Source of the DNA: Epithemia pelagica
Taxonomy: Eukaryota; Protista; Bacillariophyta
DNA: 64,000 bases
NCBI GenBank assembly: GCA_946965045.2
Contig: OX337236.1
Location: 248,001 to 312,000, forward strand
Reading direction: 5' to 3'
Positions 36,638 through 48,145 of this stretch are shown one piece after another. Positions within the stretch are counted from its first letter, which is position 1. Each line of letters starts with the position of its first letter. Made by a program: the position numbers and the translations under genes. The notes below the pieces were generated by a model that worked only from the letters and a program-made list of their open reading frames with translations, was not told where the DNA came from and searched no databases.

Positions 36638-36811
36638 CAATCCGCCTGCCCTCGGCGAATTGCTTGCTAACGCTGCAGTCCTTTGGTAGCTTTAGGGAAA
36701 GACTCCGCTGGTTGGTTGTGGCTTCTGATGACTAGGAGTCATCGGGAGCCTGCCAACAGCGGAAACGCTGAGGAGTAGATCATCGGGATCTAACCCTCTA
36801 GCGTCTGCACC
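36638..36811 (-). repeat. Split direct repeat B2 (174 bp)
   Basis: No differences seen versus 36968-37141. Confidence 0.95.
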
Positions 36812-36827
36812 GGGAGGGAGTGGTGGG

Positions 36828-36967
36828 ACCAACAGCAAACTTGGTAAAGATTGCGTTGCTCCAAAAACTCTGAGCTCCATGGCTGCTGTTGGCAGACTCC
36901 TAGACATAGCTAGTGTGATCTAGCTAGACTACGTGTAGCTACCTGAGTGTCCTGTCGCTGACGCACA
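36828..36967 (-). repeat. Split direct repeat A2 (140 bp)
   Basis: No differences seen versus 46878-47017. Confidence 0.95.
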
Positions 36968-37141
36968 CAATCCGCCTGCCCTCGGCGAATTGCTTGCTAA
37001 CGCTGCAGTCCTTTGGTAGCTTTAGGGAAAGACTCCGCTGGTTGGTTGTGGCTTCTGATGACTAGGAGTCATCGGGAGCCTGCCAACAGCGGAAACGCTG
37101 AGGAGTAGATCATCGGGATCTAACCCTCTAGCGTCTGCACC
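36968..37141 (-). repeat. Split direct repeat B1 (174 bp)
   Basis: Abuts A2 directly, reproducing the predicted circle junction. Confidence 0.95.
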
Positions 37142-37258
37142 ACATGTCTTTGCCTTGACTAGCCACCACAGCTGACTGCGGAGTGTGAGGGAGTAGCCGA
37201 TAGGACAATTGGAGGGCGTAGGACATGGGCACAAAGATACGGTTGCGGAAGAGGTGAG

Positions 37259-38263
37259 ATGAGTTCTGCAGCTCGGAGAACAGAAGAAAGCGAAACAACT
37301 GCTGAACAACTGGATCGTTTAAAAACAGTTGTCGAGGCACAACGCAAAGAATTGCACTGCGCTTTAGGAGGAGTGGATATCGCGCAAACAGAGCTGGATA
37401 AGACTCGCGTGTTGCACGCCCAGGAGCGTCAACATTTGGAAGACGTGCATGGCGGAATACTTGCATCCAAAGAGGCGTCGGTGATTCAGACGCAGAAAAA
37501 CGTGCGCGAGTTGGTGGGCGACCATCAAGCGGAGATCGATCGACTGGTGACCCGTGTGTGTGAAACTTTTGCGGAGGAAGGAGGAGACGGGGAAGACTTC
37601 GTGGAAACGGTGTTTCGAAGAGCATCTCCAAGCAACAAGAAGGTCGTGGTGGCTCTAGAGCTGTTGTTTCCGCACCCGGAAGACCAAGAAGTCGTTTTCC
37701 ACCAGATTTGTGGATTGGCCTTGGCTGGCGGACGGGAGAGGCCTTCTGCAGAGGAGGTTGTGGAACGAAAAGTGGCCGTTGTTCGTGAGTTGTTCACGCA
37801 GAACTCTGCCCGCCGTGGATTGCCTGTGCCAGTTCCCGGAGGGAGAGCCGCGACGGCTGCTGCAGCATCCGACCGAAAAGATAAGAAACCCGAGGCGGGT
37901 AAAAAGAGGTCCGAAGGGAAAGGAACTGGTGAAGCGTTTTCGAAGCGCGAGAAGCGTTCTTTGGAAGAGTGGTTGGGCCAACCGGGTTTCAGTACCCTAC
38001 CCAAGAAGCAGCGCAAGAGCAGTGCCCCTGTGAAGAGGAGCGCGAGTGTTTCGCCCAAGGAGAAAGGCCTGGGGTCGATCAAGGAAACTCCCACAAGGGA
38101 GAAATCGATTAAGGAAACTCCGACGAGGGAGAATACGGCGACGAGGGAAAACACGGCAACAGAGGACGAGCCGTTGTCGTGGAAGAAACATTTACCGGAA
38201 GTGGTTGTCCTGTCTGGCGATTCTTCGGGACGCGCGTCGAAGTCGGAATCAGACAGTGAGTGA
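37259..38263 (+). CDS. Antisense cargo ORF1 of the YR element (334 aa, coiled-coil N-terminus, basic/acidic low-complexity tail)
   Basis: ATG-initiated, heptad-like EQLDRLKTVVEAQRKELH, short internal repeats SIKETPTRE x2 and TATRE; does not overlap the YR, RT or gag ORFs. Confidence 0.7.
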   Translation: MSSAARRTEESETTAEQLDRLKTVVEAQRKELHCALGGVDIAQTELDKTRVLHAQERQHLEDVHGGILASKEASVIQTQKNVRELVGDHQAEIDRLVTRVCETFAEEGGDGEDFVETVFRRASPSNKKVVVALELLFPHPEDQEVVFHQICGLALAGGRERPSAEEVVERKVAVVRELFTQNSARRGLPVPVPGGRAATAAAASDRKDKKPEAGKKRSEGKGTGEAFSKREKRSLEEWLGQPGFSTLPKKQRKSSAPVKRSASVSPKEKGLGSIKETPTREKSIKETPTRENTATRENTATEDEPLSWKKHLPEVVVLSGDSSGRASKSESDSE

Positions 38264-38265
38264 AG

Positions 38266-38856
38266 ATGGAGGAGATGGCCGAGTTGATTGACGAGCTGGA
38301 TCAGATGGCGGATAGGCAGGCTCAAATGGCCGAGATTATGAGAGAGTTGGGACGGATGGCCGAGAGGCAAGTGGAGATCTCTAGTCGATTGCTTGAATTG
38401 AAGGAATTGGCGGAGAGGAGAGTGGAGCAGGCGATTCATGTGGTGGCGGCAGCGAACGCGGCTGTGGCCAACGGAGGAGGAGGGGGGGAGTGGGAGCCCG
38501 ATGGAGTGGGCCCTACGGGCAGAGAAGGAATGCGAGAGGGGACACCACGGGGCCGAGAGGAAGGGTCGACGGCCCGTGGAGGAAGATGGGGCTGGCGAGT
38601 GGCAAGCAAAGGGGTGGGTGGACCGAGTCCCCGTGGACGTACGAGTCCACGAACACAAGGTGGATTTATGGGTCGGCGGGCGAGCCGTGGATCGGAGGAG
38701 CGTTTCAAAGTTGGTGAGCGGGTTCGGATTCGAAACCCAAACGATCCCGCTGACCCAACTGGGCGGGTGGTGAAGGTAACAGACGCACGTATCCACGTGG
38801 AGACCGACAATGGCGTGCGTTATTCTCGAGCGGACAAGAACATAGCGAGGATTTAA
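38266..38856 (+). CDS. Antisense cargo ORF2 of the YR element (196 aa, coiled coil, G/R-rich linker, KOW/SH3-like C-terminal barrel)
   Basis: MEEMAELIDELDQMADRQ heptads; C-terminus FKVGERVRIRNP...TGRVVKVTDARIHVETDNG; ATG 2 nt after the ORF1 stop. Confidence 0.72.
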   Translation: MEEMAELIDELDQMADRQAQMAEIMRELGRMAERQVEISSRLLELKELAERRVEQAIHVVAAANAAVANGGGGGEWEPDGVGPTGREGMREGTPRGREEGSTARGGRWGWRVASKGVGGPSPRGRTSPRTQGGFMGRRASRGSEERFKVGERVRIRNPNDPADPTGRVVKVTDARIHVETDNGVRYSRADKNIARI

Positions 38857-38924
38857 GGTTGGAGCGGACGAAATAGTGATACCATAACAGAATAGTGAGA
38901 TACATTAGATGTGAATAGTGGTAG

Positions 38925-40337
38925 TTAAATATTTAGGACGCCTGCAATGGCCGCTTGACTATGAGGACCAATTGCTTTCGAGCAGTCACGGAGGTAGTGT
39001 TTGATCGAGTCTTCTTGCCATCGGAGTCGGAAGGCAATTTGGGGGAGGGGAACTTGAACGTTCCACAACGCTACAGCGGCTGTGACGCGTGTAGAATGGG
39101 CGACGAGCAAGTGGGCGTGACGCCGGTGGTAGTTGTGAGGGTTTGGGTACGCCTCCAGGCAAGCTTGACGGAGGGCTGTGATGATATCGGCCGACCTAAG
39201 GTAGGCTATTTTTCCCGGTTTGACCTGATAGGAGGCGAGGGGCAGGTGGGCTCCGATTTGGAGGGAGAGGGAGCGGCGGGCAATTGAACAGGATGCGAGC
39301 ACGGGACAGAGATAAGAGTGGCCGGAACGACGGAAGATGCGTTTCGTGAAATTATGAGCGCTTTTGTCATGCCGAAAGCGGATCTGGACTGCCGAGACGG
39401 TGTGTTCGTGTTTGGGGAGGGAAGCAAGTGGAAGCATGTCGTTCGCTTGAGTCAAGAAGACGAAGTCGCTGGAGACAAAGGCAATAGGTCGATCGTTCCA
39501 GGATGGATCATTAGGACAATTGGGAACGGCCGCGAAGACAAACTTTGAGCCAGAGGTTTGGGCAAATTCACTGGCACGGGAGCCGGTAAAGAGGCCAAGC
39601 CGGACCCAGTCGAAGAGAGTTGCGTCAAGTGACGAAGGAGGGGCCCCGACTGCACGGCAATAGAGCACGCTAAGGATGGCATCGGTGATGGGTTCCTTAC
39701 GATCGCGTGGACGTTGCCAGCGACGATGAAATTGTAATGGGTCGGATAGCAGTGGGTGCAGCAGGGTTGAGTTGGTTGGGTTGGAGATGTTAACAGGGCG
39801 GTTGAGGGCAACCTGAAGTGCGGAATGGGCAGCCGTTACGTAAGATTGAATGGTATCTGCTGCTAGGTCGGACCTCCTGTAGTAGTTCTCGCCGTTTGTG
39901 ACGTGATGTAGGTAAAGGTGTAGGATGTGTATGCATTCGTTATCGGTCAGGCGAGATAAAAGTTCGGGGGTGAGGTGATTGCGAGCGGACCATCGGGAAA
40001 AGTGAGCGCCTCGAGAGTCCAAAGTTCGATCATTCTTGTTCCTAGTTCGTCCTCGGTCCTGTTGAATTTGAAGCTTGTTAATATCATTGATAGCAACTTG
40101 GAGGGCACGCGGTAGGCGGTGGATGGGTCCAGCACTGGCTTGGACTGCTCGATAACGGAGGCCCAAGTGGGCGCAAGGGACGGGCGGGACAACAGGTCGG
40201 CATTGTGATTGAGCTCGCCCGCAATATGCGAGGCCTGTAATTGAACGGGAATAGGGGCAGAAGTGAGCATGGCTTGAAAAAGACGAGCAAGACGACGAGT
40301 TGCGGGCCGCTTGGCACGGGCGGCATGGGAGAGCCAC
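38925..40337 (-). CDS. Tyrosine recombinase of the retrotransposon
   Basis: Catalytic set looks intact: GSRASEF (R), RHDK (K), LCPV, HSTR (H-x-x-R), RW, HYLR (Y); overlaps the RNase H 3' end. Confidence 0.93.
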   Translation of the reverse strand: MALPCRPCQAARNSSSCSSFSSHAHFCPYSRSITGLAYCGRAQSQCRPVVPPVPCAHLGLRYRAVQASAGPIHRLPRALQVAINDINKLQIQQDRGRTRNKNDRTLDSRGAHFSRWSARNHLTPELLSRLTDNECIHILHLYLHHVTNGENYYRRSDLAADTIQSYVTAAHSALQVALNRPVNISNPTNSTLLHPLLSDPLQFHRRWQRPRDRKEPITDAILSVLYCRAVGAPPSSLDATLFDWVRLGLFTGSRASEFAQTSGSKFVFAAVPNCPNDPSWNDRPIAFVSSDFVFLTQANDMLPLASLPKHEHTVSAVQIRFRHDKSAHNFTKRIFRRSGHSYLCPVLASCSIARRSLSLQIGAHLPLASYQVKPGKIAYLRSADIITALRQACLEAYPNPHNYHRRHAHLLVAHSTRVTAAVALWNVQVPLPQIAFRLRWQEDSIKHYLRDCSKAIGPHSQAAIAGVLNI

Positions 40338-42799
40338 GAGAGCGCCGACGTGTTGTCGGTGCGCATGGAGATGACAAGGGTTTGGGGTTGCGGTGTAGCG
40401 TGAGAAGCCAGTCGCTGCAAGAACCAGAAGTTTATGAGAAGGACGACGAATTCAAGCAAGTTGATGTGCCACAGTGCATCGGGCGTGTCTTGAGTTGGAT
40501 CGGATAATTTGGTGGACTGCATATCTTTTGGTAGGATGAAGCCCAGGCGAAGTAAGTCGGGTTTGGTTAGTCTCCACATGAAGGGGTAGTGGGTGGATAA
40601 CCAGCCTCCCAGCCCTTCAATGGAAGCGTCGCCCAAAATTTCAAATTGCGAAACCCGCGGGATGCATAAAGCAATGGGACGGGTCCAAATGTGGGTCCGA
40701 GAAGAATGGAGGGTGGCCAAGAGCGTTCGGAGGTCCATAACGGTTTCTCGGTTGAGGGTGAACCGGGTTTTGTGCCAAAAGGAGGCGGCACGGGTGGATT
40801 TGCCTGCTGCTGCGGTGGCACGGAGGCGGTCGTTGAGTGCATACTGGAGGGACAACGTGTAATAGATGCCCAAGAGTGAGACTGGGGCGCTGTGACGGAC
40901 GAGGCCCAGAATTGTGGCCGCCATTTGCGGTGAAAGCCGACGCCCGTCGGAGTGCGTGGTGGGAAGGTCGAGGGCGTGTTGAAGATAGACCTGTAGTTGT
41001 GTCTGTTTATGGGACGGCCAGGAAATTGTCATAGTTCGAGTGTTGATGATATACCCCAGGAATTTCAGGCTGTGACTGATGTCACGCACAAATTTTATTG
41101 GATTAATAGGATCGGGTCGATGGGGGTCTTCGTCGGGGAAGCCGAAGGTGACGTATGCGGCGAGAATACTGCTATTGACTAACCGGTGGATCTCCGAGCG
41201 GATGGCCGCTCCACCGGTGTCGTCAACGAACGGAGCATACACCGGACGAGGGAAGGAGGACGGTTGGGATGCTAACAAGTGGGAGGTGCCTTGATTTAGA
41301 GCGTCGGGAGTGGCGGGCGTTAAGGTTCTGAGGGTGCGGGGGGACGGAGGAGGTGGGATAGCAATGGTGTCCGCCAAAAGAGTACGAGCGGAAGTGAGCT
41401 CAGCAAGGTAACGAGAGAGATGGGCTCGTAGCTCCCCCGGTAGCATGTAGTAGGAAGGACTGTTTTTGGCGCCAAAAATCATTCCAACGGGTATGATGAG
41501 GAACCAGCCGAGGACGCTTGCAAATGCTAAGGCAGCGTTGGGGTTGTATGTGACCCGACGGAAGGCGGCACTGATATCATCGGCGCTGAGCAGTATGTCT
41601 TCCGAGGGATGGTCAATACGCAGATTGTAGATGTACCGCAAAAAGCGTAGGAAAGCCGTGCCGTAAGCCACCGCGGGGTTACAGTCATCGTCACGTCCAG
41701 CATCAGGAATTTGGGCATTGGTGTTGCCGTCATCAGTGTCTGTGATTTTGGAGCTTGGATCGATGCACAAGCGGCCGGTGTCGCCGATGCGGTGGGGTTT
41801 GGGCGCTACCCAGTTAATGAGTGAAAGGAAAAGACCGGGGAGGAACCGCCAGATAATGCGGGGAAGGAAAAGATGATACTGTAGCTGTTCCTCTTTCTTG
41901 AACTTTTTGGTGATTTCCTCTAAGTTTTCTTGGACCCCGGGGTAGTTGTCAAGGAGGTTGCGTTGGGAAACGGCAACACGACTACAGGAATAGTGGCCTG
42001 CGAGAGGGGCGCCCAGGTGAAAAAGTTGCCAAGTGCGGGCATAGTCCAACCGTGGATAGTCCGGTGGGGGCTCAAAAGCTTTGACTCGGTCGATGATGTC
42101 AAAGGTGTCTGCCAGGCGTCTGTGATGATTATTGTAGATTCCGCCAAGCCAGCGGTACATGTCCGCATAGACGAAGTTTGCGCGACAAAGGGCAACGGCA
42201 AGCAGAAAAGCCTTACGGAATGGAAGGGGTTGGGATTTGTCTTCGCAGGGGGGCATGCGACAGACAGCGAGAGAGGTGCCATGAGCAGCGGCAACGCGGA
42301 GACGATGATAGAAGTGGAAGCTTGGCGAGGAGGCGACTAGGTTTTGTTGGTCCTGTGGGGACAAAAAATCCCATGCGTAGTGGCCGAGCAATTCAGGGGA
42401 AACAACATGGGGTGCGGTTGCCGCAAGGGGAGTGCCGTCAGGAGCAGCATGGGATGTGCCGACGTTGAGACGGTCGGGACCGAAACCAATTCGTTTGCGA
42501 TGGTGTGTGAACGACCAGAGAGGGAACAGGGGAAGAATTCCCCAGTTGGGCACCAAGGAGGAAGAGGCAAGGAGGAGTTGGGAGCGATCGGCGTCGGTCA
42601 AAAAGGGGTTGACGGTGGTTAACACCGTGTGCAACGTTGGCAACGCATAGGAGACCCGAGAGGGGGCAGCACGTGGGTGAGAAGGAAATACTGGTAGTTT
42701 GGGGACAGTAGGGACAGCCTCAGTAGTGGGAGCGGGAAGGGAGAGGAGAAGATCTGCCGTAGAGGTGGGATAAAATGTCTCGGGTGAAGTGGGAGGCAT
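39947..42799 (-). CDS. Reverse transcriptase / RNase H of the YR retrotransposon (950 aa)
   Basis: DDISAAF, FGAKNSP, FVDD, FLGYII, GDASIEGLGG, HINLLE, TDNTSA, HIAGELNHNADLLSR. Confidence 0.95.
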   Translation of the reverse strand: MPPTSPETFYPTSTADLLLSLPAPTTEAVPTVPKLPVFPSHPRAAPSRVSYALPTLHTVLTTVNPFLTDADRSQLLLASSSLVPNWGILPLFPLWSFTHHRKRIGFGPDRLNVGTSHAAPDGTPLAATAPHVVSPELLGHYAWDFLSPQDQQNLVASSPSFHFYHRLRVAAAHGTSLAVCRMPPCEDKSQPLPFRKAFLLAVALCRANFVYADMYRWLGGIYNNHHRRLADTFDIIDRVKAFEPPPDYPRLDYARTWQLFHLGAPLAGHYSCSRVAVSQRNLLDNYPGVQENLEEITKKFKKEEQLQYHLFLPRIIWRFLPGLFLSLINWVAPKPHRIGDTGRLCIDPSSKITDTDDGNTNAQIPDAGRDDDCNPAVAYGTAFLRFLRYIYNLRIDHPSEDILLSADDISAAFRRVTYNPNAALAFASVLGWFLIIPVGMIFGAKNSPSYYMLPGELRAHLSRYLAELTSARTLLADTIAIPPPPSPRTLRTLTPATPDALNQGTSHLLASQPSSFPRPVYAPFVDDTGGAAIRSEIHRLVNSSILAAYVTFGFPDEDPHRPDPINPIKFVRDISHSLKFLGYIINTRTMTISWPSHKQTQLQVYLQHALDLPTTHSDGRRLSPQMAATILGLVRHSAPVSLLGIYYTLSLQYALNDRLRATAAAGKSTRAASFWHKTRFTLNRETVMDLRTLLATLHSSRTHIWTRPIALCIPRVSQFEILGDASIEGLGGWLSTHYPFMWRLTKPDLLRLGFILPKDMQSTKLSDPTQDTPDALWHINLLEFVVLLINFWFLQRLASHATPQPQTLVISMRTDNTSALSWLSHAARAKRPATRRLARLFQAMLTSAPIPVQLQASHIAGELNHNADLLSRPSLAPTWASVIEQSKPVLDPSTAYRVPSKLLSMILTSFKFNRTEDELGTRMIELWTLEALTFPDGPLAITSPPNFYLA

Positions 42800-42979
42800 T
42801 TCATCAGACCACGGCGAACGGGCGCAAGTCGAACCTGGGCGATGATGTGCCGGTAGTCACGATGAGGGCGGGGGTTGTTGGGGGGCGTTTGGACGGTTCG
42901 GACGGTCTGAAGCCATGTGGGCTGTAAATTCCGGTGTAGGTTGGAGAAGGTGTCGAACGCGATCATGGTGACAGAACTC

Positions 42980-45900
42980 TCAGAGCGGTTTAAGGGAGGA
43001 TTGGGGCCAGTTGGAGATAGCCTGGGGAGAAAGGCAGACGTGGTGTCGATTGCATTGCAACGGTTGGCCTTCCGAGTTTGTGCGTGAACGATGGGGACCG
43101 GTGCACCCGACAACAGAGTTTTTGTCGATGTACATAAAGCAATATTGCTTTTGGTCGAAACGGGGAATGGTGAGGGAAGACGCGAGGTCGGCAAGGAGCT
43201 TACCTGAGTGGGTATAACGTTCTTTCCCTGCCGCGGTGAGGGTGACAAGCGGGACGAGAGCTTTTTGGCCAGGGCGACGTTGGGGTTGAGCGGAGTCAGA
43301 ACGAGCACGCTTGGGCGGTGGTTGGTCGGCAGCACGGTCAGGAGGACGGTCCGAGGGGGAGCGACGCCGTTGGGCACGATCGTAGCGTTCAAGAGGAGAA
43401 CGAGAGTCACCCCGGTGATCAGGACGAGATGGTAGGAGATAGTTGGGGGTGGAGCGGCAAAACAAGGGTGACATGGAGTTGGTGTGTTGGTGGGAGAGTA
43501 TTGTAGGAGCCGTAAATAAAAGGGTAAAGGTGGATCTCCAATCCAAACAGTAGGTGAGATTTGAGTCGGTTGAGTGCGGGCTCACATCGTAGATGAGAGT
43601 GCACTGGGGAACAAAGCCTTCAGGGTCTGCGGTGGCGGGGCAAGCTATTTTGGTACGATTCTGGGCGCCCCAGCGGAGGAATTGTTGAAACAGGTCACAG
43701 GTGTGATGGAGAAGGGCCTGAGATAGTTGTAGCGTGTGACTGGGTTGCGAGGAAGCCAATGTCAACCATGCATCTCGAGTTTGAGCTTGATCAAACTGAT
43801 GAGCTGCCCAAAGCAATTGACCGGCAAGGGGACCGCGGAGAAGAAAGGGGCTAAAACCTGGAGGGAATTGGGGGAAGGAGTCGTCGTTGGTGAGTACTGT
43901 GTTTAAGAAAAACACAATATGATGGAAGAACAGCTTAAACTGGGTGCAGGAGAGACCTTGTTGCGGGAGGCGACCCTCTGGGGACAAGGGGATGGACCAG
44001 AGGAAGTGCCAAGGAGTGAGGGATAGATATAATGACTTAGGGTCGTCGAGATGAAGAGTCTGACCTGCGTTGATACGGAATGTTCTCAGTGCTTTACGCG
44101 GGGCTTCTGCGTGAAGGAAAGACTGAGAAAAATCGACGCGGAACGGAGCCACCGGGTATTTGGAAGCTTCAATGGCGGCGGCGAGGAGGTCAATGGCCGC
44201 TACCTCGGCGGCAGAGCTGCGATGATCAGCGCCTGCGTAGGGCAGAACTTGGCGCAGCCAATCGTTGTTGAGATGGCTGGGGGTATGGAGAAGCTCGTGG
44301 GAATAGGAGGGACGTCTCGTGGTTGTGGGCAAGTTGGGGTCAACCAAACGTAGATCAGTAGGTAGAGCAACGATGCCCAGGAAGGCCCATTGGACTACAT
44401 GAGGTGGGAGTTGGTCGGTGTCTTGGAAAATAAAGCGGTCAAAAGTAAATTGACCGCGCTCTTCCATGGTGCGTCGGATGAGGGGAAGATACGCGGAGGA
44501 AGCCAAGGTGGAATGCACATATTTGAGCCGTGTGCTCGTAAACCAAGTTGGGTTGTCAACCGGGAGATACCAGGGTGAGGTAGTGGTGGAAACCAGGGGT
44601 GCGTCCCAGGCCTGACGTTGGTGCGCCAAGGGGTTGAAGGATTGGGAGTGGTAGGACTCCATGGCTGGAGAGGCTGGGTGATAATGAGTGGGTCGACGTG
44701 GTGGGTTGTGGGGTGCATGAGGAGAGGCGTTGGAGTAGGCATTGGCTGTAGAGGTGGAAGGAGACCGCTGGAGGCGGGGGGGAGGAAGGGGGGGGAGGAA
44801 ATGCTCCTGTCGCGAGGGAGGACGAGGCGGAAGTTGCTGAATGGGGTTTTGGGTGGGAAACGGCGGTGGGTCCGGACCGACGAGGAGACGATTTTGATGG
44901 GGTTGAGGTGGCGGCTGCTGTGGTTCCAGCTGCTGAGGGGTTGGAGGAGCACGCTGTTGTGGTTCCATCTGCTGGGGTTGCAGAGGAGCACGAGAGACAG
45001 GGACTGGGGCAGGAAACCGTGGCGAGGGGTCCAGGGCTGCTGGTGATGGAATGCGAGCCGTTGGAGGGTGAAAGGCTGTAGGACGACGAGGGAGGCTTTC
45101 TGCGGGAGGTTCCAGAGGGAATGGTCGAACTTCCGGTGTCTGGGGAGAGGAAGGAGGGTTTTTTTGCGAGGGTTTGTCCGGGGAATCGACATTCAAACGG
45201 GTAACCGTGTTGGGTTGGGGTGGGTTGAGGGACGAAGATGGTGACCGATCGTGTGGGGTGGATATGACGCGTTGAGCGAGATGATCGTTTGGGAGGTGAT
45301 TCAAAAATTCCGGAAGGTATTTTTGGACATCAAAGGAAGAAAAGGATTTGAAACCGTAGGAGGTGGACCACGACTGTGTTTGAGGGCGAAAGAGGAAAGG
45401 AACGTATGTGTGGGTGTTGTCCACGTGAGGGATGTTTTGAGGGAGGAACAGGTCGACGTCTTGGGAGGATAGCATGTTTGCTTTCTCCCGAAAGAAAGTG
45501 AAGAATTTGGTTCGCATGGTATGGGACGGATTGTTTTGGAGGAGTGCATCGGAGAAAAGCTTGGTTGTAAGGGAGAAGAAAGGATGCACAAACAGGGCTT
45601 CATAAGGGTGGATACGAGCCGGATAAGAACGGGGAAGGTTGGTAGAGATGGGGACGTTCTTGAGGGTGGTGAGGTCGGCTGCTATCTGCTTGGAAGTGTG
45701 CCAAACGGTAGCAAAGTCGTCGGCGCGTTGACTCACGGTGAGGAGCCAATCGTTGACAAAAGGGACGTCAAGCCAAGAGAGAGTTGTTGCCAAGTCTTTG
45801 AGATGGGAAGAACGAGTGGCTGGCATCGGGTTGTAGGTTTGATTCCAACCAAGAATAGCGTTAATTAAACTGGCGGAGTCAGGAATGGAGGCAGGATCGA

Positions 45901-46825
45901 AAAGGAGACCAATAGGAAGATGATGATGACGAGGAAGGGGAAGGGCGGAAAGAGCAATCCAGGAGCCCTCGATAGGAGAAGTGTTCTCAACTTGAATTGT
46001 GAGAATGGGTTCGTCGACGCGATGGAGGCGCGAGAAAATTTGATGGGCATGTGGGGGGGAGTCTTGGGAGGGGATCCAAAGAGAATGCCACGGGTCGTCA
46101 GGCGAGTGGAGGCGTGACGTAGACTGTTCAAGGATAACAGTGGAAAATAGGGCTCGGTGAGCACGGAGGGAGGCCAGTATGGAACTGGGGTGGGAAGTAA
46201 TCCACGAGTAGGGGTTAAGTTGTGAAATGGATTGGGGACGGATGCCCGATTGGAAAGCGAACGCAGGGGCAATTAACGTTGTAGGAAAACGAAACTGCGA
46301 GGAGCTGATTTTCTGGGGGGTATCGGAAAATACATGTGCTTGCAAGCCTTTTCCGTTGAAGGCAAACGCCGTGGGCCCGAGGACAACCAGGTAAGGGCCG
46401 GACGGGGGTGGGATTTTGGAGGAAAGCTTGCTGGGATCGGTGGTGGGAGCCGAGTCAAGCTGGACAACGGCTAGGAAGCCGGCAATAGTAGGTGAGTCTG
46501 CAGCCAGGGTATACTTGGCAGGGGAAGTGACTACGGTAGCGTCGGGAGAGGAATTATTTGGCCCAAAATTCAGGGAAAGAAGATTGGCCAAAAATTCCTT
46601 CTGGATTTCCTTGGATTTTTCTTCAGGGGACAAGAAAATAAAGTCTTTAGAGTTTTGGAGATCGGTAGGGTGAAGAGGAGACATGCCGGAGAACTGATTT
46701 GGATAGGTTGTGGTGGATGCCACAGGCTTGAACAAACCAGAAGGGGAGAACGAAAGGAACGACTGGGTCGTATCGGGAGAGATTAATCCGCGAAGGGTAG
46801 GATTAATAGCGAAAGATAACGACAT
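42980..46825 (-). CDS. Gag-like ORF1 of the YR retrotransposon (about 1280 aa)
   Basis: Uninterrupted ORF, P/Q-rich centre, C-terminal Cys/His cluster CFMY...CTGPH...CNRHHVC; first ATG outside repeat A at 46825. Confidence 0.85.
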   Translation of the reverse strand: MSLSFAINPTLRGLISPDTTQSFLSFSPSGLFKPVASTTTYPNQFSGMSPLHPTDLQNSKDFIFLSPEEKSKEIQKEFLANLLSLNFGPNNSSPDATVVTSPAKYTLAADSPTIAGFLAVVQLDSAPTTDPSKLSSKIPPPSGPYLVVLGPTAFAFNGKGLQAHVFSDTPQKISSSQFRFPTTLIAPAFAFQSGIRPQSISQLNPYSWITSHPSSILASLRAHRALFSTVILEQSTSRLHSPDDPWHSLWIPSQDSPPHAHQIFSRLHRVDEPILTIQVENTSPIEGSWIALSALPLPRHHHLPIGLLFDPASIPDSASLINAILGWNQTYNPMPATRSSHLKDLATTLSWLDVPFVNDWLLTVSQRADDFATVWHTSKQIAADLTTLKNVPISTNLPRSYPARIHPYEALFVHPFFSLTTKLFSDALLQNNPSHTMRTKFFTFFREKANMLSSQDVDLFLPQNIPHVDNTHTYVPFLFRPQTQSWSTSYGFKSFSSFDVQKYLPEFLNHLPNDHLAQRVISTPHDRSPSSSLNPPQPNTVTRLNVDSPDKPSQKNPPSSPQTPEVRPFPLEPPAESLPRRPTAFHPPTARIPSPAALDPSPRFPAPVPVSRAPLQPQQMEPQQRAPPTPQQLEPQQPPPQPHQNRLLVGPDPPPFPTQNPIQQLPPRPPSRQEHFLPPLPPPRLQRSPSTSTANAYSNASPHAPHNPPRRPTHYHPASPAMESYHSQSFNPLAHQRQAWDAPLVSTTTSPWYLPVDNPTWFTSTRLKYVHSTLASSAYLPLIRRTMEERGQFTFDRFIFQDTDQLPPHVVQWAFLGIVALPTDLRLVDPNLPTTTRRPSYSHELLHTPSHLNNDWLRQVLPYAGADHRSSAAEVAAIDLLAAAIEASKYPVAPFRVDFSQSFLHAEAPRKALRTFRINAGQTLHLDDPKSLYLSLTPWHFLWSIPLSPEGRLPQQGLSCTQFKLFFHHIVFFLNTVLTNDDSFPQFPPGFSPFLLRGPLAGQLLWAAHQFDQAQTRDAWLTLASSQPSHTLQLSQALLHHTCDLFQQFLRWGAQNRTKIACPATADPEGFVPQCTLIYDVSPHSTDSNLTYCLDWRSTFTLLFTAPTILSHQHTNSMSPLFCRSTPNYLLPSRPDHRGDSRSPLERYDRAQRRRSPSDRPPDRAADQPPPKRARSDSAQPQRRPGQKALVPLVTLTAAGKERYTHSGKLLADLASSLTIPRFDQKQYCFMYIDKNSVVGCTGPHRSRTNSEGQPLQCNRHHVCLSPQAISNWPQSSLKPL

Positions 46826-46877
46826 GACAAAGGAAGCAAAGGCAAAGACAAGAAAGAAAGAAGAAAGGAAGAAAAAC

Positions 46878-47017
46878 ACCAACAGCAAACTTGGTAAAGA
46901 TTGCGTTGCTCCAAAAACTCTGAGCTCCATGGCTGCTGTTGGCAGACTCCTAGACATAGCTAGTGTGATCTAGCTAGACTACGTGTAGCTACCTGAGTGT
47001 CCTGTCGCTGACGCACA
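46878..47017 (-). repeat. Split direct repeat A1 (5' end of element)
   Basis: Matches 36828-36967. Confidence 0.95.
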
Positions 47018-48145
47018 TGATCCCATAAATTCGAGCAGTATATACACTCCTCCCATAACTTTGAAGACATCTACTAATTGGAATATAGACGTCATTGTCT
47101 TTTTCACTTGTAATTCTAATAGTTTGTGGAATTTTGAACATTTTCATATATCATAGTCTACACTGATTTTGAAATTATAACAGTCGTTTCGTGTATCAAA
47201 ACTTGGATGATTTTTGTGATTTTCTCATCCCATCGACCATGGCCCAACTTTGAGCAGTACGCACACACTCAATATCCAACAGTAAACGTCAAGACCTTCC
47301 ATTCTGGTGTAAAATAATATGAACTATAGGACTTTGTCTTTATTTGTGATTTGACAGCACCGCTGTTGAGCATTCGGCAATTCCCTCTCTCAGACCATGT
47401 TTTTGCCTGCTTCACAGCATTGACCCTTTTTTGACACATTGAACCTTTCCTTGGTCAACTTTCGCCTCCACATACCATCTGTCTTGATCAATTGACTCTC
47501 CTTCATCCATTCTGACCTGGTTTGGCATCATTGGAAGATGATCCATGCCATTTTCATTGTCCGCCCTCATTGTCTCTCATGGTCATCGCGGATGGCCGCT
47601 CAAGTTCGAGAAAAGCGACTAAAATGACAAAAAATTCTCACTATGAATAAATTTGTACTCGAAATTAAAACTGGGAGTTTTCAAACCGTGTTAAGATGGG
47701 AGCAGTTTATGGGACACAAACCATATATCGCTAAAGTTTTATGGGAGTAGTTTATTTGCTAATCCGTTACCCTTAAAACCCGTTCCTTACGTATGGCGTT
47801 AAGTAGTGTAGTCTTGACTACTCCTATTTAATTTTCGAAAAAGTCACGCATACTGGGTCATTGTGAGTCGGCGCCACAACAGCAGCCACAAAAGTCCCGT
47901 CGCGTCCACAAATTGAAAAACACAAATTTTGGCTGAAAGATAGACCACGCCAATCATAAAAGACTCACAGCATTACTGATACCTCTATCTAGTTTTTAGT
48001 TATGAGTGCTATCTTGGATCTGTAGAGCGTCTGTCGATCAACCACAAGAATCACATCACGTCACTTCACACGAAAAACTGAAAGCTTAAGCCATGGCCTA
48101 GTTGTCAGAAATGGAGAAGGTTGTACTACGCCCGATGGTTACAAA

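Follow-up and report, generated by a model that had tools for sequence, protein, structure and literature searches.

Does a retrotransposon of the diatom Epithemia pelagica carry two genes of its own antisense to its replication genes, or are the two reading frames seen there something else? The question is raised by a 64,000-nucleotide (nt) stretch of genomic DNA (positions 248,001-312,000 of contig C9 in a 60.5-Mb, 23-contig genome, to which all copy and lineage counts below refer; hereafter the window). Here a 10.4-kb element on the minus strand (36638-47023) encloses a cassette of two small plus-strand open reading frames (ORFs), ORF1 and ORF2. To our knowledge, retrotransposons rarely carry accessory genes, and most of those that they do carry are unexplained. 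Antisense ones are best known from plant gypsy elements and from a few retroviruses. Our analysis indicates that ORF1 and ORF2 very probably form a real, selected cassette borne by the element, in which ORF2 is a member of a retrotransposon family of coiled-coil/SH3-barrel proteins.

Layout of the antisense cassette

The first-pass annotation of the window had described two plus-strand ORFs of 334 and 196 amino acids (aa), 2 nt apart and inside the element, which converge on its recombinase ORF over a 68-bp AT-rich spacer containing three AATAGTG motifs. Both the coordinates and the arrangement were confirmed, the cassette being lodged between the recombinase ORF and the internal repeat B1. 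The spacer has an A+T content of 60%, compared to 45% for the whole element, and its three AATAGTG motifs (at 38872, 38891 and 38914) represent three of the five matches on both strands of the window, where about 4.8 would be expected. The corresponding spacers in other lineages of the element, described below, measure 53 nt with one AATAGTG (L052) and 67 nt with AAATAG variants (L050). This spacer may hold 3′-end signals.

At the other end of the cassette, just 2 of the 117 sites in the leader upstream of ORF1 vary among the ten copies found in the genome, versus about 8.8% of sites in the two ORFs. The leader is a candidate promoter or 5′ untranslated region (UTR), and contains an upstream ORF of 10 codons (37225-37257) that stops 1 nt before the ORF1 ATG. 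Fusion of the two proteins by frameshifting was also considered, and was rejected on the grounds that the ORF2 frame opens only at 38260 and that no slippery site precedes the ORF1 stop.

Both ORFs evolve as coding sequences

The openness of a frame proves nothing by itself at this locus, since a G/A-rich, T-poor plus strand favours long frames that are accidental. The plus-strand GC skew is +0.18 to +0.43 throughout the element, with A in excess of T, and does not change where the antisense cassette lies; as a result, C and T abound in the sense genes and G and A in the antisense genes. T accounts for 16-18% of the two ORFs, which lowers the number of stop codons, and an overlapping 423-aa frame on the minus strand is itself open in 8 of 10 copies. 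Evidence for coding was thus sought in the way the copies differ.

The 1.78-kb stretch occurs ten times in the genome, at 96-100% identity. When conservation among these copies was examined, a check put forward with the original proposal, the frames held up well: ORF1 is intact in nine of the ten and so is ORF2, and all the length changes in the nine intact copies are in-frame (an 18-nt deletion in ORF2 in four copies and a 24-nt deletion in ORF1 in one). In the remaining copy (L005), ORF1 is interrupted by a stop, and ORF2 by a 1-nt deletion and stops. The ratio of non-synonymous to synonymous differences per site (pN/pS), pooled over all pairs, was 0.30 in the ORF1 frame and 0.32 in the ORF2 frame, compared to 0.9-1.8 in the other plus-strand frames and 0.6-2.3 in the other frames overall, with the exception of the antisense frame that shares its wobble positions with the coding frame. 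Counting each variable site once, codon positions 1, 2 and 3 contained 25, 21 and 42 variable sites in ORF1 and 15, 7 and 30 in ORF2 (40, 28 and 72 combined; chi-square p = 1.5e-5). Substitutions common to several copies were synonymous in 35 cases and non-synonymous in 26.

The 423-aa minus-strand frame showed a pN/pS of 0.43 across ORF1, but 0.97 across ORF2. Since ORF1 and ORF2 are in different frames, a single minus-strand frame can share wobble positions with ORF1 only, and a low antisense ratio is a by-product wherever those positions coincide with those of the plus-strand frame. As the 423-aa frame is the by-product frame across ORF1 but not across ORF2, we judge it to be under no constraint of its own. 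The constrained frame, on the other hand, switches at the ORF1/ORF2 boundary exactly as the plus-strand frames do.

The cassette has diverged together with its element

Protein searches of the genome revealed three further, divergent lineages of the element in the same species with the antisense ORF1-ORF2 layout, two of which were scored. Relative to the element in the window, the reverse transcriptase (RT) ORF of these two is 60% identical, the recombinase 47-49% and ORF1 and ORF2 37-41%. In the first (L052; C6:878-886 kb), the first sense ORF is 48%, the RT 60% and the recombinase 47% identical, and an intact antisense ORF2 homologue of 177 aa, with coil, Gly/Arg linker and barrel, lies beyond a convergent spacer; 12 nt separate its ATG from the upstream stop of an ORF1 homologue with a broken frame. 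In the second (L050/L055; C7:3.198-3.214 Mb), antisense homologues of ORF1 (41%) and ORF2 (37%) are found 67 nt from the recombinase stop. The third (L066) is a contig of ENA assembly ERZ21939226, in which ORF1-like and ORF2-like genes are followed by a recombinase and a first ORF on the opposite strand. A 4.6-kb host flank in this assembly is 100% identical to contig C4 of our genome (G000:C4), and the assembly is therefore of the same strain; L066 is a further lineage rather than another species, and provides no cross-species evidence.

Place, gene order and orientation of the cassette have thus been preserved while it diverged, along with the core genes, to 30-41% identity, which excludes recent capture by a single copy or a single family. 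Capture of an ordinary host gene by this one copy, one of the outcomes that would have undone the original proposal, is likewise excluded by the presence of the cassette in all copies and in divergent lineages. The suggestion of an element-encoded accessory module, by contrast, fits all three of its occurrence in 10 of 10 copies, the purifying selection and the constant antisense position. We conclude that the cassette is a genuine, long-standing accessory module of retrotransposons of the split-direct-repeat, recombinase type, carried antisense to the replication genes.

ORF1 was found only in these recombinase-type elements, as far as searched: in the genome its profile matched the lineages described here and nothing elsewhere, homologue searches returned same-species proteins only, and no relatives emerged when metagenomes were scanned once with the ORF1 profile and once with that of the recombinase.

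A separate array in the same genome carries remnants of ORF2. At G000:C6:1673289-1705273 (loci L011-L014, L026-L033, L051 and L056), a unit of exactly 10,510 bp is repeated head to tail at least four times. Every unit contains an ORF2-like stretch that is degenerate, with 40% aa identity and three TGA codons in frame, along with weak matches to parts of the 1325-aa first ORF. The units give no RT or recombinase match, and each has a minus-strand ORF of 1045 aa.

ORF2 belongs to a protein family shared with Copia-type elements

A profile built from the ORF2 proteins of three lineages had 208 matches at E <= 1e-3 among 1.84 billion representative proteins. Most are 100-230 aa long, and most of those listed align through the barrel positions. 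The 24 that we read are all built alike: close to the N-terminus lies a coiled coil, some 25-30 residues long, which a variable linker connects to the barrel at the C-terminus. Full-length matches to the profile include P0010 (positions 4-181, E 7e-13) and P0011, and the family motif reads F.VGDRV.I.N...D..G.V..VT..RV...TD.G....RA..N. A metagenomic protein of 1319 aa (P0005), with 17 SH3 repeats of the MIB/HERC2 type, also matches the profile through a F.VGDRVRV strand, indicating that the motif of the first barrel strand is not specific to the retrotransposon family.

To place these proteins, genomic context was taken from the contigs of nine family members. Six lie directly upstream of a large polyprotein on the same strand: P0010, P0011 and P0063, from the same strain, and P0009 (ERZ25039514), P0015 (ERZ27280938) and P0012 (JGI 3300060904), from metagenome contigs. 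An RVT_2 domain and/or a CCHC knuckle was found at five of these six Copia-type loci. The polyprotein of L070 and the downstream ORF of L063 were tied to Copia gag-pol by BLASTP, being 41-45% identical to the Copia gag-pol of the same strain. In L060, L061 and L062, the family ORF starts 37-160 nt inside the 5′ copy of a pair of 100% identical long terminal repeats (LTRs). In L060, L061 and L070, it either adjoins the next ORF or shares 1-4 nt with it. At least one of the three metagenome contigs is from another organism, and probably all three are, judging from the low identity of L062 and L070 to the genome (the L062 host flank matches it at 79%, in one conserved gene only, and L070 at 70% at most). 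The remaining members, P0006, P0007 and P0008, are located within decayed recombinase-type elements of the same strain.

Some further features of the Copia-type elements were noted. The coiled-coil/barrel ORF is the first gene in the elements at L060:9665-15936, L061:9660-15858, L062:9635-15657 and L068:8001-13293. A 49-aa ORF separates it from gag-pol in L060, and the gag-pol ORF opens with an Arg/Gly-rich stretch in the metagenome contigs L063 and L070.

Every ORF2 relative inspected lies inside a retrotransposon. The ORF2 profile matches the genome at about 50 places, part of which were inspected; frames of 183, 252 and 317 aa recur among them. On the strength of these matches, ORF2 belongs to an undescribed and unnamed family of small proteins found in two unrelated classes of retroelement. 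Its setting differs between the two: in the window it lies downstream of the recombinase ORF, on the antisense strand, as the second gene of its cassette, whereas in the Copia elements it is the first sense ORF. A quick tree of 85 family members did not resolve their relationships (6 of 82 branches starred, the protein in the window on a long branch), and is therefore silent on which class of element had the gene first.

Predicted structures of ORF1 and ORF2

An AlphaFold2 model of ORF2, computed from the 85-sequence alignment, comprises a helix (residues 2-70; predicted local distance difference test, pLDDT, > 90), a disordered linker (71-145) with 22 Gly and 14 Lys/Arg in 75 residues, and a five-strand barrel (147-196; pLDDT > 90). 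The protein had been read by eye as a coil, a Gly/Arg linker and a KOW/SH3/Tudor-like barrel. The coil, the linker and an SH3-like barrel are indeed predicted, but the KOW assignment found no counterpart in Pfam: PF00467 does not match ORF2 of the window, and only 3 of the 85 family members reach an E-value of about 0.005. ORF2 has no match in Pfam or PHROGs (the best Pfam row, DUF4314, has an E-value of 0.05 and 14 bits versus a cut-off of 27), and a feature search of the ESM Atlas gave no usable match.

Fold comparison (Foldseek and VIA-align) puts the barrel among the SH3-like small barrels, with Z-scores of 7-7.8 and a root-mean-square deviation (rmsd) of 1.3-2.3 Å over about 51 residues, and no row stands out. 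Matching folds include the Tudor domains of PHF1, PHF19, MTF2, TDRD3 and 53BP1, PWWP domains, the KOW domains of Spt5 and NusG, and NdhS; the Atlas search adds, with a low template-modelling score, the C-terminal DUF5641 domain of BEL/Pao retrotransposon polyproteins. Residues conserved across the family are G150, D/E151, R152, N157, D163, G166, K170, T172, R175, T180, D181, G183, R188 (99%) and N192 (100%). R152, N157, K170, R175, T180, R188 and N192, together with the Gly/Arg linker, would suit the binding of nucleic acid.

The first-pass description of ORF1 as a coiled coil with a basic tail agrees with its AlphaFold2 model, which is based on a shallow alignment. A long helix spans residues 14-107 (pLDDT about 80-90 as far as residue 60, then declining to about 55 at 107), followed by a low-confidence helical region (111-185) and a disordered tail (196-334) that has 31 Lys/Arg and 31 Ser/Thr in 139 residues. 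The islands that the lineages have in common are ALE.LFPHPED, RR.LPVPV, EK.SL..WLG and, at the C-terminus, a hydrophobic stretch, EVV.L..SS, that precedes acidic residues and Ser. The motifs LFPHPED and RR.LPVPV lie in the small helical region. As a lead, the tail resembles a nuclear localisation signal and its end a SUMO-interaction motif. ORF1 has no match in Pfam or PHROGs, and neither the Atlas feature search nor a fold search of the PDB gave a family beyond the coiled coil. A prediction of the ORF1-ORF2 complex, made with alignments not used, scored 0.00 and is informative neither way.

The host element

A repeat search showed that the direct repeats of the element are split and run A1-[ORFs]-B1-A2-B2, with B1 and A2 overlapping by 6 nt (Table 1).

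Table 1. Features of the element and of its antisense cassette, in window coordinates
Feature	Position	Strand	Remarks
Terminal repeat B2	36638..36811	-	Direct-repeat family D1, 174 nt, 100% identical to B1; kept in most copies
Internal repeat A2	36828..36973	-	Direct-repeat family D2, 146 nt, 99% identical to A1
Internal repeat B1	36968..37141	-	Cassette begins just inside; found in 10/10 copies
Leader upstream of ORF1	37142..37258	+	Nearly invariant among copies; candidate promoter or 5′ UTR
ORF1, 334 aa	37259..38263	+	Stop TGA at 38261-38263
Open frame, 423 aa	37525..38796	-	Sense strand, overlaps ORF1 and ORF2; judged non-coding
ORF2, 196 aa	38266..38856	+	ATG at 38266; frame differs from that of ORF1
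Convergent spacer, 68 bp	38857..38924		Separates the ORF2 stop from the minus-strand recombinase stop
Putative tyrosine recombinase ORF, 470 aa	38925..40337	-	Motifs TGSRASE, HSTRVTAA and KHYLRD, read by eye
Putative RT/RNase H ORF, 950 aa	39947..42799	-	Motifs SADDISAAF, FGAKNSP and FVDD, read by eye, in RT order
First sense ORF, 1325 aa, gag position	42980..46957	-	Cys/His cluster at C-terminus
Terminal repeat A1	46878..47023	-	146-nt family D2

The recombinase ORF has a pN/pS of 0.14, and its three motifs are invariant between two lineages of the element. The 1325-aa ORF is 48-51% identical to its counterparts in the divergent lineages across the C-terminal 555 aa or so. Its C-terminus (42983-43100, minus strand) carries a Cys/His cluster of the form C-x12-C-x3-H ... 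C-x3-HH-x-C, which may be a zinc knuckle like that of some gag-like proteins of recombinase retrotransposons.

The split repeats, the RT-like and recombinase-like motifs and the multi-copy, near-identical state of the element lead us to call it Ngaro-like, within the DIRS order. We stop short of calling it a proven member because no profile, PDB or profile-profile search recognises the RT or recombinase ORF. The RT ORF has no Pfam match even at E <= 10 and no PDB sequence match, and its alignment to the Copia RT profile with hhalign has a probability of 0.2%; the recombinase ORF has no match in Pfam (E <= 10), PHROGs or PDB sequences. A methyltransferase, which discriminates Ngaro from DIRS1/PAT elements, has no Pfam match in any of the ORFs, but Pfam matches nothing else there either. 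None of the three sense ORFs (38925-46957, minus strand) of this young element with ten copies was recognised by Pfam (even at E <= 10), PHROGs or PDB sequence searches, and they appear to represent a very divergent lineage.

A possible function for the cassette, and its alternatives

Taken as a whole, the explanation we favour is that of a selected antisense accessory module with the role of a nucleic-acid cofactor, which on balance seems somewhat probable. The more specific proposal, that ORF2 forms oligomers, binds nucleic acid and thereby serves as a cofactor of the element's ribonucleoprotein or complementary DNA (cDNA), is a tentative one. We prefer it because the coil would multimerise the barrel, and because an RG-rich linker and conserved residues that are polar and basic would suit contact with nucleic acid. 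In this scheme, the cassette would be transcribed from its own promoter on the leader/B1 side, with 3′-end signals in the A+T-rich spacer. ORF2 would be translated by restart after the ORF1 stop or, equally, from a separate transcript; restart is suggested by the stop-start junctions of 1 and 2 nt and by similar junctions in the Copia elements, the tight packing being repeated as 2 nt here, 12 nt in L052 and 1-4-nt overlaps with the next ORF in the Copia elements. The ORF2 coiled coils would then oligomerise, presenting several barrels and the RG-rich linker to nucleic acid, and the protein could act in the assembly, nuclear delivery or integration of the ribonucleoprotein or cDNA, with ORF1 as a possible adaptor.

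A number of observations weigh against this interpretation. Substitutions restricted to a single copy are mostly non-synonymous (49, about 60%, versus 33 synonymous), although this is as expected from selection on the replicating lineage combined with decay of copies after insertion. None of the three public runs that contain the stretch is recorded as RNA, and all three behave like assemblies of genomic DNA, as contig sets with pieces of up to 509 kb; the only joints they contain are non-canonical (CT..AT, CC..AC), of low depth and from one run, and are silent on splicing or transcription either way. ORF1 and the cassette layout were found in this one species only, and the evidence of selection on the cassette is confined to it. 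The RT and recombinase identities come from motifs read by eye and from the repeat structure, with no statistical match. Lastly, no profile or fold match gives either protein a biochemical activity, and the cofactor mechanism is weakly grounded, as the barrel fold is common to domains that bind proteins, histones and nucleic acids.

In one of these runs (X3), the summed contig depth reaches about 20,000 across window positions 37489-38123, in the middle of ORF1, versus about 2,000 in the flanks (around 10-fold); this peak is not readable as expression.

The alternative with most to be said for it is a chromatin tether, in which an oligomeric barrel of the Tudor or chromo type would read a chromatin mark or bind a chromatin protein, while ORF1 would provide nuclear import and a SUMO-interaction-like end, the complex steering integration. 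Chromodomains steer the integration of chromoviruses in this way. The histone-reading Tudor domains of PHF1, PHF19, MTF2, 53BP1 and TDRD3 are among the best fold matches, the ORF1 tail has Lys/Arg clusters and the conserved EVV.L..SS with acidic residues after it, and the invariant LPVPV of ORF1 could be a ligand for an SH3-like domain. However, the fit to the PHF1, PHF19 and 53BP1 Tudor domains (rmsd 1.3-1.7 Å over about 51 residues, Z 7.3-7.7) is in the generic range, Z-scores of 7-8 being typical of a common arrangement. Moreover, the aromatic cage is not conserved: among the 85 members, F147 alone is mostly aromatic (75%), and aromatic residues occupy positions 177 and 187 in 39% and 49%, where the protein from the window has H and S. 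The first-pass annotation had offered chromatin reading as one example of a role; a Tudor-type reader of methyl-lysine is improbable on this evidence, and we consider a tether in general to be unlikely.

Distinctly unlikely too, in our view, is a counter-defence role, in which a portable cassette acquired independently by different retroelement classes would suppress RNA silencing or another anti-transposon defence of the host. Viral silencing suppressors have been acquired independently as portable accessories in just this manner. This idea would account for the presence of one small-protein family in two unrelated classes of element at differing positions and orientations, and for the fast evolution of the family (37-39% identity in ORF2 against 60% in RT). 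In addition, convergent transcripts from the two strands would be expected to form double-stranded RNA, which would be a reason to need a suppressor. Against it, neither protein shows any likeness to known suppressors (the PADLOC defence library was outside the searches), leaving the argument one of analogy. A scenario of similar standing, and one we also doubt, combines elements of both: a portable coil/barrel gene would have moved between Copia-type and recombinase-type elements of diatoms and, with ORF1, would form an independently transcribed, operon-like antisense unit translated by stop and restart, which would act on the host, through silencing suppression or chromatin tethering, and not on element RNA.

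Recent capture, by a single lineage of the element, of a host gene pair that plays no part in it could draw on the lack of ORF1 relatives outside these elements in the databases searched and on the partly inspected ORF2-like places in the genome. It is nonetheless very improbable, given a cassette found in every copy and in at least three lineages whose core proteins are 47-60% identical, at a constant place and orientation, and given the retrotransposon setting of all ORF2 relatives inspected. Least credible of all is that the ORFs are not genes, being frames opened by a purine-rich, T-poor strand or shadows of a real 423-aa gene on the sense strand, since pN/pS is lowest in the plus-strand frames and shifts at the ORF boundary, third codon positions vary in excess, and the frames have 37-41% identical protein homologues in other lineages, 208 distant relatives and a confidently predicted fold.

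With the cassette read as an accessory module, its implications are several. It is apparently the first antisense two-gene accessory cassette to be described in a DIRS-order-like element, as far as we could find; the open-access literature on Ngaro, DIRS and diatom antisense ORFs contains no description of the cassette or of the ORF2 family, though absence there is no proof. ORF2 adds a new small-protein family with a confidently predicted fold, in two mechanistically different classes of retroelement and, in its Copia version, in at least two organisms. Such sharing across classes argues for a general function, either in retrotransposition or in host-element conflict in diatoms. The succession of upstream ORF, ORF1 and ORF2 at gaps of 1 and 2 nt also offers a compact system for studying tightly packed eukaryotic cistrons. 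Diatom transposons are activated by stress and shape diatom genomes, and for this reason an element-encoded regulator, if that is what the cassette proves to be, would be of practical interest for diatom genetics.

Comparison with known systems

Proteins of the LINE-1 ORF1p type combine a coiled coil that forms oligomers with a nucleic-acid-binding domain. They are our working analogy for ORF2, in which a coil would likewise multimerise a small C-terminal binding domain, encoded beside the replication genes. ORF2 differs in having an SH3-like barrel in place of the RNA-recognition motif (RRM) and C-terminal domain (CTD), and no homology between the two was detected.

HTLV-1 HBZ, HIV-1 ASP and primate L1 ORF0 are retroelement proteins read antisense to the genomic RNA. 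They are the products of single genes that start from the 3′ LTR or the 5′ UTR (see also PMC11963269); they bear no sequence or domain relation to ORF1 or ORF2, and no bZIP or other family was found here.

Among recombinase-type elements, the Ngaro elements of Cafeteria burkhardae, 6-7 kb long, have the structure A1-[ORFs]-B1A2B2 and three sense ORFs recognised by Pfam (gag-like, RT/RNase H and recombinase), with no antisense genes reported (PMC8547959). The stramenopile host, the repeat structure and the ORF order are as in the window, whereas the element described here is 10.4 kb long, has core ORFs that escape Pfam and carries the antisense cassette. An inverted gene does occur in elements of the DIRS order, in the form of the recombinase of Kangaroo in Volvox and of a PAT element of Daphnia (PMC4157794). 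One gene is thus opposite to RT, as here, but in those elements it is the recombinase that is inverted, whereas here the recombinase is in the sense orientation and two extra genes are inverted.

In diatoms, Copia-like elements have been scored for an ORF upstream of the polyprotein by Maumus et al. (2009, PMC2806351), whose Additional file 1 gives it as 'ORF1', the main text being without a description of the protein. Its position, as listed, is that of the ORF2 relatives, the first ORF inside the 5′ LTR before gag-pol, and it may be of the same family or a separate gag. The family member in the window differs from that arrangement in its antisense orientation, its 3′-end location and its pairing with a second gene.

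The closest precedent in position and orientation is provided by the Retand/Tat lineage of plant Ty3/gypsy elements (Grande, RIRE2, Retand), which have conserved antisense additional ORFs (aORFs) lodged after the last pol-type gene and before the 3′ terminal repeat (PMC11963269). These aORFs are present in most copies of a family and are of unknown function, with nucleic-acid binding or regulation suspected, and 97% of their clusters encode TRP28 (PF04195) (PMC11963269). Neither ORF1 nor ORF2 has a Pfam match to TRP28/Transposase_28 (PF04195). The Retand aORFs are found in LTR elements of flowering plants, and the cassette in a diatom element with split repeats, a recombinase-type ORF and two packed cistrons; common to both are the antisense orientation, the location between the last pol-type gene and the 3′ repeat, and the presence in most copies.

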